A DNA stretch of 63,298 nt, the filler included, from Guillardia theta CCMP2712 (taxonomy: Eukaryota; Protista; Cryptophyta): NCBI RefSeq assembly GCF_000315625.1. It is 7 parts of 7 records of this genome, joined end to end, with 100 filler letters (N's around TTAATTAATTAA, not from the genome) between each part and the next. Parts side by side here need not be neighbours in the genome. Positions count along the whole stretch, not along the records: positions 59,167 to 63,298 come from NW_005434146.1; 6 more parts are not named here. One strand, written 5' to 3'. The stretch's first letter is position 1; each line of letters opens with the position of its first letter. Of the stretch, positions 59,167 through 63,298 are shown piece by piece. The translations under genes were made by a program, and so were the position numbers. A model generated the notes under the pieces. The model did not search any database and was not told the origin of the DNA. It was given only the letters and a program-made list of their open reading frames with translations.

Positions 59167-60005
59167 GGACGTTGGTCCTGGACTCCTGAAACGGCACTGG
59201 CCCACCGCGACGAGCAGAAACAGAAACGAAGGTGTCCCAAGCATCGTCTTGTGGTAATCGCCCCGTACCTCCAGCCGAAGGAATATCAGCATGTTGCAGG
59301 CCGCGTCGAGCGCTCCGAAGAAAACAAAGATCTGCAGCCCCCCCAAGCCTCATGTCAGCTCCTTGCTCCACCCCGACCTCCCGCCTGACTCACCTTGTTC
59401 ACCCACCGCACTCTGTTAAAGGCTGCTCCGATCCCCGCCATCAGCAGAGCAAGCGGAGGGAAGAACCAGCTCCGCAGCTCCAGACGCGCATCCCAGCCGC
59501 ACGACACGTTGCTGGGTATGGCGTGCGGCTCTAGGATGACATGCATCGAGCTGATTGATGGGAAGAAGAAGTCTTGCTGCCGGAGAGCTGCGACCTCGTA
59601 TATCCTCACCACCAGCCAAGGCACGGCCACGAGCAGAGCGATGAGCTGACCGGCTCTCGAGGACATGAAGGCGGTGATGGGCTCCCATGAGAAGACAGAC
59701 AGGAGAGGATCGTGACGGTAGACGTGCCTGTCCTTCAAGGCAAGGTCCATGAAGTTACCGGGCTGCTGGGTGTAGTTGCGCACAAACGCATCTAGGAAAG
59801 ACGCGTGGTTGACCTCGATGATGCTTGATTCTCTTCGACTGTTCGGCTGATTTTCTGCTTCTTGCGTTATGTCTATTGGCATTGGATGCTCGCGAGGTTC
59901 CTCTCGCGTCGAGGAAGTCACTTCGACGTAGGCATGCGGTCGCAGGACGTCCTCAGGGGAGAAGATAGTTTCCATCTCTTGCATTCCTAGGGCGCTGGGT
60001 TGCAA
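59167..60005 (-). CDS. Multi-TM protein, possible paralogue of the neighbouring TM-RelA gene; 3' part lost in a gap
   Basis: TM1, a loop, then FFPPLALLMAGIGAAFNRVRWVNK|IFVFFGALDA, resembling FVQPLVCVLAVVTARLGYRRVPK..FHVIGVFE. Intron 59332-59393. Confidence 0.5.
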
Positions 60006-61200
60006 GGGATCAGGAGGGATCAGCTAGAGGAAGGAGGTAACATGATCTAGGGAAAGGAGGTCGCGCCATTTTGGTTCTCGGTGCTGCCTGGGTACACTCA
60101 GGTTCTGACGCGAGCTGGCAGCCCGTCTCTGAGAGTGTCACTGGACGAGCAGCGCCGTCCTCTGCTCCGCCATGGTGCAAAAAATCGATTTTTGGGTGGC
60201 TACTAACCCCCTTGTTGAAGGGTTGCTGAGGTACCCCAATTAAAGTTTTTCACCCCTGGTTTAATCGTGTTTATGACCGGTATGCTAATGTATTGCACCG
60301 GTGGTCCATGTAGGCCCGTTTCAGGGAACTAGTTTTAAATACTAATAAATGGTTGTGGTACTACTGGAATCACTATGTAAATTACAATTTAAATCACTTT
60401 TAACATTGGTCCACAACACATGGATTGAATTCAAAAATGCAACCGCACCGACCTGTCTGACGGTTTACTATATCAATGCGTCATTGCGAGTAGTTCTTTC
60501 GTCATCTTTCGTCATTCATTAGTCGCAGAATAGATTCTTGTCTCATCAAGACGACTTCAGGACCAGGAGGAGGAGGAGGAGGAGGAGGAGAATTGAAAAT
60601 TGTCGAGTAAATCGAGAGTAATCAGATGCCCCGAGAACAATATCACTGATTTACAGAAAAGAAACGTGTGTTTCTCATCCAATTCATAGAGACTATGATT
60701 CGTTTTTTCACAGATGACAGCCTGGTATTTCTCAATAAAAAAACAAACAATCTTGTGTTCATCCTTGTATGTAACAATCAATCATTCAGTTTCACTGCAG
60801 ACCTTCTGACGGCACTCTCATGACGACTTACACGACATGATCTGTGATTTACCTTAAGTCTCCCATGCTCAAGTCATAGATGTTGATTAATGACGAGCAG
60901 ACAGAAAACCTGCTCTAACGTCTTCGAAAATGTCGAAGCCCGTCGGACATCACGTGAAAAATCGATCTCGTGTCTCATTTTGTGAAATGTGACTATGATG
61001 TTGATATAATCGGCTGCTTTTGATGAACCATTTAGATCTAGGCAATGAGATTGAAAGATGAGCATACTGCATTAAAAAATGGCTAGCGTTTGCGAAAGTT
61101 GGAACAAAATCAAACATCATACGAGAAAAAGTACCAATTACTGAAAAAAGTGGAACAAACCAATCGTGCATTCATTTGCAAATAAAAAATAGCACCTAAC

Positions 61201-63288
61201 TTACTCACATCTCAGGTTCCTATACGCTACATACCTCTTGTGCCCCTCCGTCGTCCTCAGATCCATAAACCCCTTCACCAGAAGCTGCAGCTCGCACACG
61301 TGCCCCGCTACCCCCAGCTCCCTCGTCCTCTCCGTCACCACCCGTAGGTTCAAAAGTACGTCCCTGTACCCCCCCGTCGTCCGCGCGTCGAAGCTCGGGT
61401 CCAGCCTGTTCTTGATCCTCATCACCACGATCTCGGGGTCTCCCAGGATCCGCTCCAGACACTCGCACAGGTCCTCGAGCTGCTCGAAGACGATGCACTG
61501 CCGCACCACGTCCAGCAGCCTCGACACGTCGTTGTTGTAGGATCGCACGAGCTTCTCCACCGCCCGGTCCACGCTCTTCATCGGCGCCCATCGGATCCGC
61601 TGCTGAAGCTCCTCGTCCTCCTTCGCCTCCCTCCACCCGATACACTCCACCGACCCGTTAAATCCATGGGGCAGAGCCGGGAACAAGCCCCTCGACTCCT
61701 CCGCCAGCTCCTGTACCTTCTTCCGGAAGATCGGGTCGGCAAACACCGCCTGCGCGTACAGCTGGTCTAGCGACACCACCCGCGGGTCCTTGCTCAGCGG
61801 CCACACGCTCTTGCTCGGCACACGCAGCGAGGAGGACCCGCCCTGGCTCCTCCTCAGCATCCACTCCAGCGGGCTCGACGACGACTCTAGCGGGCTGTCG
61901 GGGTCATGCACGCGGCTCTGAACCAGCGTGGTCGGGACTTGGACCTGCGAGACCAGCTGGCCGATGCGCTCCAGGGTCAGGCGGCTGGTTTGGGAGGAAG
62001 AGAGAGACTGCCAGAGGTCGTTGTACTTGAGAAGCTCCGACTTGACGTTGTTGAAGGCCCTGTGAAGCAGAAATTGTCTTCCGATGGTCAAATAAAGCCA
62101 ATAGGCAAGTAGCAAGTAGTTACTGTACCCAAAGGTGTCGACGGTTGGAGGTGACCTAAACCATTGGGTGTAAAGTGCCACACCACCGCACGATGTGAAG
62201 ATGCAGTAGAAGGGCAAGACTGTCATCATGTACTGCTCTCGAAACTCGATCACCATCCCGAAAGAAAAGTCCCCAATGCCCCAAAAAAGATAAGGAGCAA
62301 GAACATCTGTATCTAGAAAGGCATGGCTTATTTCAAAAACACCTATGACGTGAAACATGGACGCGAACATCGTCTTCGGTACCCGTCGATACCCTAGCCT
62401 TGCCGTCACTACCGCCAAGACGCATACAAGAGGCTGAACAAAGGAGAAGATCGCTGCAATTATCTTCGGTAGTAGAAACTGAACGCTGAAACTCATCCGA
62501 GCCCCCCTGTAAGCCTCGCCCTCCTTGCACACTCCCATCCCCGGCCTCTCTCTGCACGAGAAGCTCGTCCAGTCCTTCCACGCCTTCCCCGACACACTCC
62601 CTACTTCCTCCCCGCTCCCCACCGGCTGCTCCAGTATCGAGAGGTTGAAGGCGATCGGGTCGTAGCCCGCCAGCTGCTTGTCAGGGTTGAGGCTGAAGTG
62701 CCAGCCGTTGGCCTCCGCCGGCGGAGCGAAGAAGAAGTAGAGCGTGTTGTTCACCGTCTTGGTGGACGCCGGAGATCGCTGGTTGCAGCTGTCAAGCATG
62801 AGAGAGAAGTTGGAGACGGAGGCGCTGGGAACGGAGGCGCGAGGAGCTTGATCGCGGTATTCTTGTATGTGCAATCTTGCGACATAGACGGAAGTAGCTT
62901 TGTTTTGCAGGAATCCGCTGAGATCAGAAGATTGGGAGTACATGTACGTCAGGAACGCTGCGACGGCAAGAAGCACGACCTGCGTTGTAAGCTTCTGCAA
63001 CGCATTGCTCACAGGGTTGGAAGAAAACATGACGCTCGAGGTCATGGTATTCTGTATCCCGGTGACGATGTTTCGTAGCTTCTCGTCCATGATGCCTGCA
63101 GGATACTTGCCCTTGTACTTCATGAAAGATCTTTGCGAGAATTCAACCGAATCCCTTTTAACAAAACTGATTGATTGAGATCTCCAAAAACTGTCAATTC
63201 TTGAATCGATTGCCTCTGACATTTGACTCATGCTGACTTGGATTGACACATCTTCCACCTTCGAAAAAACATTTCCCTGGCAAACCAT
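61201..63288 (-). CDS. Intronless ~6-TM membrane protein with an extracytoplasmic domain and a C-terminal RelA/SpoT-like nucleotidyltransferase (synthetase) domain
   Basis: PMKSVDRAVEKL, LLDVVR, RIKNR, GGYRDVLLN, CELQL and GHKRY appear in RelA/SpoT synthetase order, with hydrophobic helices upstream. The frame is open to the window edge. Confidence 0.88.
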   Translation of the reverse strand: MVCQGNVFSKVEDVSIQVSMSQMSEAIDSRIDSFWRSQSISFVKRDSVEFSQRSFMKYKGKYPAGIMDEKLRNIVTGIQNTMTSSVMFSSNPVSNALQKLTTQVVLLAVAAFLTYMYSQSSDLSGFLQNKATSVYVARLHIQEYRDQAPRASVPSASVSNFSLMLDSCNQRSPASTKTVNNTLYFFFAPPAEANGWHFSLNPDKQLAGYDPIAFNLSILEQPVGSGEEVGSVSGKAWKDWTSFSCRERPGMGVCKEGEAYRGARMSFSVQFLLPKIIAAIFSFVQPLVCVLAVVTARLGYRRVPKTMFASMFHVIGVFEISHAFLDTDVLAPYLFWGIGDFSFGMVIEFREQYMMTVLPFYCIFTSCGGVALYTQWFRSPPTVDTFGYSNYLLLAYWLYLTIGRQFLLHRAFNNVKSELLKYNDLWQSLSSSQTSRLTLERIGQLVSQVQVPTTLVQSRVHDPDSPLESSSSPLEWMLRRSQGGSSSLRVPSKSVWPLSKDPRVVSLDQLYAQAVFADPIFRKKVQELAEESRGLFPALPHGFNGSVECIGWREAKEDEELQQRIRWAPMKSVDRAVEKLVRSYNNDVSRLLDVVRQCIVFEQLEDLCECLERILGDPEIVVMRIKNRLDPSFDARTTGGYRDVLLNLRVVTERTRELGVAGHVCELQLLVKGFMDLRTTEGHKRYVAYRNLRCE

Positions 63289-63298
63289 GCCCTCTCGT

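Follow-up and report, generated by a model that had tools for sequence, protein, structure and literature searches.

We analysed the 4-kb piece at positions 59167-63298 (from NW_005434146.1) of a 63,298-nucleotide stretch of Guillardia theta CCMP2712 DNA (assembly GCF_000315625.1), seven genomic parts joined end to end with filler between them; this whole stretch is called the window below. On the reverse strand of the piece lies a single-exon open reading frame (ORF) whose predicted product has six transmembrane (TM) segments, a large loop between the first two of them and, at the C-terminus, a domain with the fold of RelA/SpoT homologue (RSH) synthetases and the size of a small alarmone synthetase (SAS). 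It is followed, beyond a spacer, by the start of a second gene of the same family. The features are collected in Table 1, with amino acids counted from the first methionine codon of the ORF (M1).

Table 1. Features of the reverse strand of the analysed piece, in window positions (GC3, GC content at third codon positions; HMM, hidden Markov model; AF2, AlphaFold2).
Feature	Positions	Strand	Basis or remark
ORF, 695 aa plus stop, single exon	61201..63288	(-)	stop TAA at 61201-61203
aa 1-55, poorly conserved, low GC3	63124..63288	(-)	GC3; only loose alignment with Guillardia and Hanusia inter-module linkers
aa 56-98, conserved pre-TM motif (YPAGIMDEKL...SVMFSSNPVSNAL), predicted cytosolic	62995..63123	(-)	alignment; common to A-type and B-type modules
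TM1, aa ~99-120	62929..62994	(-)	hydropathy; AF2 helix 45-65 of P0001
Predicted extracytosolic beta-sandwich loop, aa 121-265 (145 aa)	62494..62928	(-)	AF2 strands 77-213, pLDDT about 80-89
TM2-TM6 bundle, aa ~266-410	62059..62493	(-)	hydropathy, AF2
TM6 helical extension (to about aa 431), then Ser/Pro-rich linker, aa 411-503	61780..62058	(-)	AF2 and composition
RSH synthetase-fold domain, SAS-sized, aa 504-695 (~190 aa)	61204..61779	(-)	profile, AF2, Foldseek
K571-S-x-x-R575-A-x-x-K579	61552..61578	(-)	form AP[IM]KSxxRAxxK, as in Tas1
D593-V-V-R596	61501..61512	(-)	HMM alignment; D-x-x-R spacing as in Tas1, versus D-x-x-x-x-R in RelP
G640-Y641-R642 (then D)	61363..61371	(-)	aligns with GYRS of RelP
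E666-L-Q668	61285..61293	(-)	aligns with catalytic E-x-Q of EIQIRT; following R-T replaced by L-V
H683-K-R-Y686 (H..Y)	61231..61242	(-)	HMM alignment to RelP
Second family member, A-type, start only	59167..59984	(-)	cut by piece edge
A-type gene, exon 1	59394-59984	(-)	ATG 59982-59984; aligns with P0002 aa 4-130
A-type gene, intron, 62 nt	59332-59393	(-)	GT..AG; exons align contiguously with P0002
A-type gene, exon 2	59167-59331	(-)	cut by edge; aligns with P0002 aa 131-165

Homology of the C-terminal domain to RSH synthetases emerged only with a family profile and not with the single sequence. Searched against the PDB by phmmer, the single sequence gave a sub-threshold match to Tas1, a (p)ppApp synthetase that serves Pseudomonas aeruginosa as a type VI secretion toxin (PDB 6ox6), over the K-S-x-x-R-A-x-x-K...D-x-x-R stretch. 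The profile of an alignment of 125 homologous domains matched the same structure at E 6.9e-5, with the significant match covering only 42 residues, and B. subtilis YwaC/RelP (6fgk) at E 3.3e-3 over profile positions 72-192, the whole catalytic core. Pfam RelA_SpoT (PF04607) was matched at E<=1 by 47 of the 125 homologues (best 1.7e-6), and the homologues P0188 and P0190 carry precomputed PF04607 annotation; the curated PF04607 score was not reached by the ORF protein, and the relative P0102 scored 21.6 bits against the cut-off of 27. The AF2 model of the domain has a pLDDT of 94, and a Foldseek search with it returned RSH synthetases for every one of the top 50 matches. In the structure comparison the scores were 13.4 for RelQ, 13.3 for RelP, 11.8 for CapRel (like FaRel2, a tRNA pyrophosphokinase of the toxic SAS, or toxSAS, group), 11.5 for Tas1, which had the highest identity (23%), 11.4 for both the Streptomyces exported SAS and the long RSH B. 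subtilis Rel (8acu), 10.4-8.4 for other long Rel/SpoT/RelA proteins, and about 7 for polymerase-beta-type nucleotidyltransferases. On this modelling we regard it as established that the domain has the alpha/beta nucleotidyltransferase fold of RSH synthetases and not a class III cyclase fold; neither the structural nor the sequence scores tell small-nucleotide acceptors from RNA acceptors.

A preliminary description of the locus, made from the sequence alone, had placed a synthetase-like domain at 61204-61590, with the motifs K..R..K, D.VR, GY.D, ExQ and H..Y and without an HD hydrolase domain. The synthetase-like fold, with its catalytic residues intact, and the motifs, all present and conserved family-wide, agree with our results, and the range given holds the catalytic core, but the fold begins N-terminal of it, at aa 504 (61779). 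Pfam and NCBIfam scans of the ORF protein likewise detected no HD, TGS, ACT or EF-hand domain; the TM module lies N-terminal of the catalytic domain.

When the profile is aligned to RelP, K571 and K579 fall on conserved lysines and D593 on the Asp of DIAGVR. From general knowledge of RSH enzymes we take the K571..K579 motif to bind the phosphates of the donor ATP and D593 to be the metal-binding Asp. Five core residues, K571, K579, D593, R596 and E666, are invariant in the 125 aligned homologues and account for at least 99% of ungapped residues across 380 domain copies; in 43 two-domain proteins this KKDRE set is kept in both copies (41/43 and 43/43). The ratio of nonsynonymous to synonymous substitution rates (dN/dS), measured on a JGI orthologue of 80% identity, comes to 0.26 overall, with 0.15 for the TM part, 0.24 for the linker and 0.34 for the domain. 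We conclude that the domain very probably works as a pyrophosphokinase. It departs from canonical (p)ppGpp synthetases at three points: the Arg of R-x-K is Pro, an Arg stands at Asp +3 and not +5, and EIQIRT becomes ELQLLV. The Pro and the D-x-x-R spacing (D-x-x-R-x-x-I) are common to the ORF protein and Tas1.

The layout of the membrane module was taken from hydropathy and an AF2 model (pLDDT 78, 16 sequences), which together bear out the earlier outline of TM1, a loop of ~150 aa, five more TM segments and a C-terminal domain. The 'helical linker' of the preliminary description stands in part: the TM6 helix does run on to about aa 431, but aa 432-503 hold 16 Ser and 7 Pro in 72 aa, with the small conserved motifs L-E-W-M and VPSK..W, and are probably flexible rather than a rigid helical transducer. 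The beta-sandwich loop, variable within this subfamily, carries ANGWHF, DPIAF, an invariant W237, three N-x-S/T sequons and the cysteines C168, C245 and C254, of which C168 and C245 are largely conserved among homologues. The TM2-TM3 loop (RLGYRRVPK) and the stretches just before TM1 and after TM6 hold clusters of basic residues, and the TM3-TM4 loop is acidic; in 16 homologues, 36 sequons lie in the loops versus 9 elsewhere, about 4-6 times denser in the loop. Because of these positive-inside charges and the enrichment of sequons in the loop, we consider it likely that both termini face the cytosol and that the sandwich lies on the outside or within a lumen. The catalytic domain would then be cytosolic, as the preliminary description had supposed and as the conserved loop cysteines also suggest. 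No plastid presequence had been visible to it, and we saw no signal-peptide-like N-terminus either in the ORF, which runs to the piece edge, or in the paralogue next to it, which is complete at its N-terminal end.

A structure search, which the preliminary description had proposed for both domains, succeeded for the catalytic domain, but the membrane module gave no Foldseek match in the PDB at E<=1e-3. Polycystin and the PAC channel were considered as relatives of the module and rejected, with TM-scores of about 0.1-0.2 and an E of 0.13 for polycystin, the top row. A word-based homologue search and an ESM Atlas feature search of the membrane module found cryptophyte kin only, or nothing. An Atlas shape search of the ectodomain found discoidin and Big_2-type sandwiches at TM<0.45, so that the modelled sandwich might be called vaguely similar to discoidin or to a carbohydrate-binding module (CBM), a weak likeness.

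The ORF belongs to a cryptophyte nuclear genome, and among named proteins the nearest to its product is the two-module protein GUITHDRAFT_104927 of Guillardia theta (P0002; 1213 aa, about 50% identical). Its second half is the orthologue of our ORF and its first half that of the downstream gene fragment, which suggests that A-B genes are arranged in tandem here. In the Guillardia genome an uninterrupted ORF spans the first and second modules (L001, JH992982.1, 6619-9744), and two modules are also found in transcriptome-derived proteins of Hanusia phi and of an MMETSP strain. Two catalytic domains, in the order [TM+RSH][TM+RSH], occur in 41 of 151 retrieved relatives; a single-module form exists in Hanusia (P0019). 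Since the order along the strand is B-type module, stop, spacer and A-type start, we lean towards reading the ORF as the second half of an A-B gene whose start lies upstream of the piece, with a tandem copy following. The A-type paralogue has the pre-TM motif in the version PGxF/LMD...FSxEP and a TM1-TM2 loop of only ~45 aa, and its complete N-terminus is acidic and hydrophilic. Between the ORF gene and its JGI orthologue, dS is 0.20 in the catalytic domain versus 1.55 in the TM region, a contrast consistent with homogenisation of catalytic domains. The two catalytic domains of the Guillardia gene on JH992982.1 (7321-7553 and 9424-9656) share a 233-nt stretch of 100% DNA identity, which could be gene conversion between modules or assembly collapse.

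At its 5' side the reading frame stays open through three more codons to the piece edge at 63298; the candidate starts are M1 (63288), M56 (63123) or a codon upstream of the piece. The public gene call for the contig (product P0001) begins at M56. GC3 of codons 1-47 is low, near intergenic values, and that of the aa 1-55 segment is 0.32-0.52 versus 0.6-0.96 further on; this segment may belong to a 5' leader, form an N-terminal tail of the protein or, in a two-module protein, link one module to the next. The spacer between the two genes is 1.2 kb long and AT-richer (GC 0.42), and an Rfam search of the piece gave no match.

The same DNA is present in freshwater and lake metagenomes and in sequencing runs of two organisms; a search of metagenome contigs for related loci found no relative. 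By read matching, DNA runs cover the entire piece, and a run guessed to be RNA yields near-identical contigs of the coding parts only. The sole certain RNA-seq run matches the conserved domain and the spacer with hits of 60 nt that are mostly partial. In the spacer, positions 60409-60822, with (AGG)8.7 at 60565-60590, attract up to 18x reads from this run, again mostly partial; a UTR (untranslated region), an unannotated transcript or a dispersed repeat could account for the reads around the trinucleotide repeat. At 61655-61669, contigs from three runs (two organisms) lack one nucleotide of the window at 61657, have an extra one after 61669 and differ by several substitutions besides. The net effect is a compensated frameshift that alters ~4 residues of the variable hairpin insertion (aa ~540-545); the difference may be an allele, strain or paralogue variant, or an error in the window contig.

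The family is large. An exhaustive phmmer search returned 2103 representative clusters at E<=1e-3, of which 909 reached E<=1e-10; most share only aa ~500-695, and in nearly every long member each catalytic domain is preceded by several hydrophobic or TM helices. The named members are almost all from cryptophytes: Guillardia theta (at least 12 genes), Hanusia phi, the non-photosynthetic Cryptomonas paramecium, Rhodomonas abbreviata, Hemiselmis virescens and Teleaulax amphioxeia. Two come from dinoflagellate transcriptomes (P0224, Dinoflagellata sp. TGD; P0237, Polykrikos kofoidii), which may mean a wider distribution or RNA of cryptophyte prey or contaminants. Family members are expressed, being present in the MMETSP and EukProt transcriptomes. 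Some Guillardia paralogues bear the automatic UniProt label 'RelA/SpoT domain-containing protein', and one has the JGI label 'ppGpp synthetase/RelA/SpoT-type nucleotidyltransferase'. Other domains are occasionally joined to the RSH-like one: a JGI metagenome protein of 1959 aa (P0144) combines an NAD:arginine ADP-ribosyltransferase, leucine-rich repeats (LRR), several TM segments and a C-terminal RSH-like domain, and LRR and CAP-Gly domains occur in P0244 and P0217, respectively. Fusions of the P0144 type hint at an immune-receptor-like use of the RSH-like domain. PADLOC and NCBIfam scans of the family gave weak rows only, among them 13 members weakly matching the phage-defence candidate PDC-S33.

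Literature searches on the cryptophyte family turned up no paper about it, and neither a membrane receptor-like nor a tandem two-module RSH form appeared in the literature consulted; the word 'transmembrane' occurs nowhere in the 2011 RSH survey, which lists only soluble, non-plastid divRel SASs for fungi, Dictyostelium and diatoms (PMC3153485). According to a 2022 review, (p)ppApp is unreported in plants or algae (PMC10107265). The preliminary description had overlooked the earlier records of non-plastid eukaryotic RelA_SpoT domains, as well as the size of the family and the possibility that the ORF is half of a two-module protein.

We propose, as a reading whose chances we hold to be evenly balanced, that the protein is a membrane-controlled pyrophosphokinase making an alarmone-like nucleotide on the cytosolic face of its membrane. 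The N-terminus and the catalytic domain would face the cytosol and the sandwich the outside or the lumen, and the catalytic domain would use ATP to pyrophosphorylate a nucleotide acceptor at its 3'-OH, releasing an alarmone-like product. Control would be exerted by the membrane/ecto module, whose probable means would be oligomerisation, or else modification of the Ser-rich linker, a flexible one, and not a rigid helix. In the two-module form, [6TM+RSH][TM+ecto+5TM+RSH], the arrangement would resemble the 6TM-C1-6TM-C2 plan of adenylyl cyclases. As to the acceptor, our guesses run from an adenine nucleotide through a guanine nucleotide to an RNA 3' end, the adenine type coming first because Tas1, a (p)ppApp synthetase, has the nearest motifs. 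The picture drawn in the preliminary description, a receptor-like protein with a cytosolic RSH domain outside the plastid, fits all the points we examined, and a receptor or defence role is plausible. A wider generalisation, which we think rather unlikely, is that cryptophytes, perhaps with some dinoflagellates, possess a receptor-coupled non-plastid alarmone system with dozens of plasma-membrane proteins per genome, in which a variable ectodomain drives a cytosolic Tas1/SAS-like pyrophosphokinase, or two of them, the product, (p)ppApp or (p)ppGpp, serves as a second messenger of the eukaryotic cytosol or as an immune signal, and the plan is convergent with that of the 2x(6TM+catalytic) adenylyl cyclases.

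Several points weigh against the pyrophosphokinase proposal. The single-sequence Pfam and NCBIfam scan of the whole protein missed the catalytic domain, with no Pfam match at E<=1. The altered canonical motifs imply an acceptor site unlike those of known (p)ppGpp synthetases, so that the acceptor could be an unexpected one. A Ser-rich, probably flexible link of ~70 aa weakens any model of direct ligand gating, and the structure and shape searches found no identifiable ligand-binding relative of the ectodomain. The ORF is cut by the piece edge on its N-terminal side. Finally, the RNA evidence for the exact locus is weak and ambiguous, and we do not accept it as proof of transcription or of the 5' end.

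Of the alternatives, the one that survives best, though we think it unlikely, is that the protein is a defence or self-intoxication effector like toxSAS enzymes or CapRel, in which a biotic cue such as a virus would lead to pyrophosphorylation of tRNA or other RNA 3' ends, or to a Tas1-style drain of ATP through (p)ppApp, and so to shutdown of the infected cell. Tas1 being the best sequence match speaks for it, as do the size of the expansion (2103 clusters, at least 12 Guillardia genes) combined with a fast-evolving ectodomain, as in immune receptor families, the LRR and ADP-ribosyltransferase fusions of P0144 and P0244, and the 13 weak PDC-S33 matches; RelA_SpoT is also an effector domain of fungal NOD-like receptors (NLRs; PMC4986451). 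The search for an antitoxin tells otherwise: the protein ends 9 aa after H..Y, with no antitoxin-like or pseudo-zinc-finger (pseudo-ZFD) extension, its downstream neighbour beyond the 1.2-kb spacer is a member of the same family, and no immunity or hydrolase partner is visible within the 4-kb piece. The indifference of the scores to acceptor type gives no preference to RNA either. That the protein is instead a (p)ppGpp synthetase of the plastid envelope, the periplastidal membrane or the ER-derived outer membrane, feeding the plastid ppGpp pathway and having its leader upstream of the piece, strikes us as improbable. All characterised algal and plant RSH synthetases do act in plastids (PMC10107265, PMC3153485), and the ORF, open at the piece edge, leaves room for such a leader; yet the complete N-terminus of the A-type paralogue has no signal-peptide-like segment, the accessory domains from HD to EF-hand are missing, and Cryptomonas paramecium also expresses a member. 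Least probable, in our estimate, is a channel or transporter whose RSH-like domain is a non-catalytic, nucleotide-binding regulator: the six-TM layout with its large TM1-TM2 loop recalls polycystin/TRP-type channels, polycystin heads the Foldseek rows (non-significantly) and canonical acceptor-site motifs are altered, but the catalytic Asp, Glu, Lys and Arg are kept in the 380 copies at the frequency given above, both copies of two-module proteins included, a conservation that a pseudoenzyme would hardly show, and the TM-scores to channels are low.

To our knowledge, plastids are the only place in eukaryotes for which alarmone synthesis is firmly documented, and roles for it in the cytosol are disputed. 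The present family, which is large, conserved, expressed and found in a major algal lineage, tethers RSH synthetase domains with intact predicted active sites to the membrane. It is a candidate for (p)ppNpp signalling linked to receptors, or for immunity based on nucleotides, beyond bacteria and plastids. It widens the range of RSH-superfamily architectures by a membrane receptor-like and a tandem two-module form, and provides a sequence link between eukaryotic proteins and the lineage of the Tas1 toxin.

Among known systems, the long RSHs of plants and algae (RSH1-4, CRSH) belong to the same synthetase superfamily as the cryptophyte domain; unlike these and the bacterial Rel, RelA and SpoT, the cryptophyte protein has no HD, TGS/ACT or EF-hand domains. 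RelQ (SAS1) and RelP/YwaC (SAS2) share only 16-17% identity with the domain and differ from the cryptophyte protein in having the R-x-K Arg, the D-x-x-x-x-R spacing and EIQIRT where it has ELQLLV; the cryptophyte protein is, in addition, eukaryotic and membrane-tethered and has an extra beta-hairpin insertion (aa ~535-551). Compared with Tas1 it lacks a secretion-system delivery domain and an immunity protein, and compared with the toxSAS enzymes CapRel, FaRel2 and FaRel it is a eukaryotic membrane protein with neither a fused or adjacent antitoxin nor a pseudo-zinc-finger C-terminal extension. The divRel SASs and the RelA_SpoT domains of fungal NLRs are, as it probably is too, non-plastid, synthetase-only eukaryotic RSHs, and they are biochemically uncharacterised (PMC3153485, PMC4986451); those are soluble or fused to NOD/STAND domains, whereas the domain of the cryptophyte family hangs on a 6-TM module that bears an ectodomain and is often duplicated within the chain. 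With the membrane adenylyl cyclases (6TM-C1-6TM-C2) and the receptor guanylyl cyclases the likeness is one of plan only, an analogy and not homology: the catalytic folds are unrelated, both RSH copies of the cryptophyte proteins have the full set of active-site residues, and a long Ser-rich linker takes the place of the rigid signalling helix, but the two-module form, like the membrane adenylyl cyclases, repeats the unit of TM bundle and catalytic domain twice per chain.

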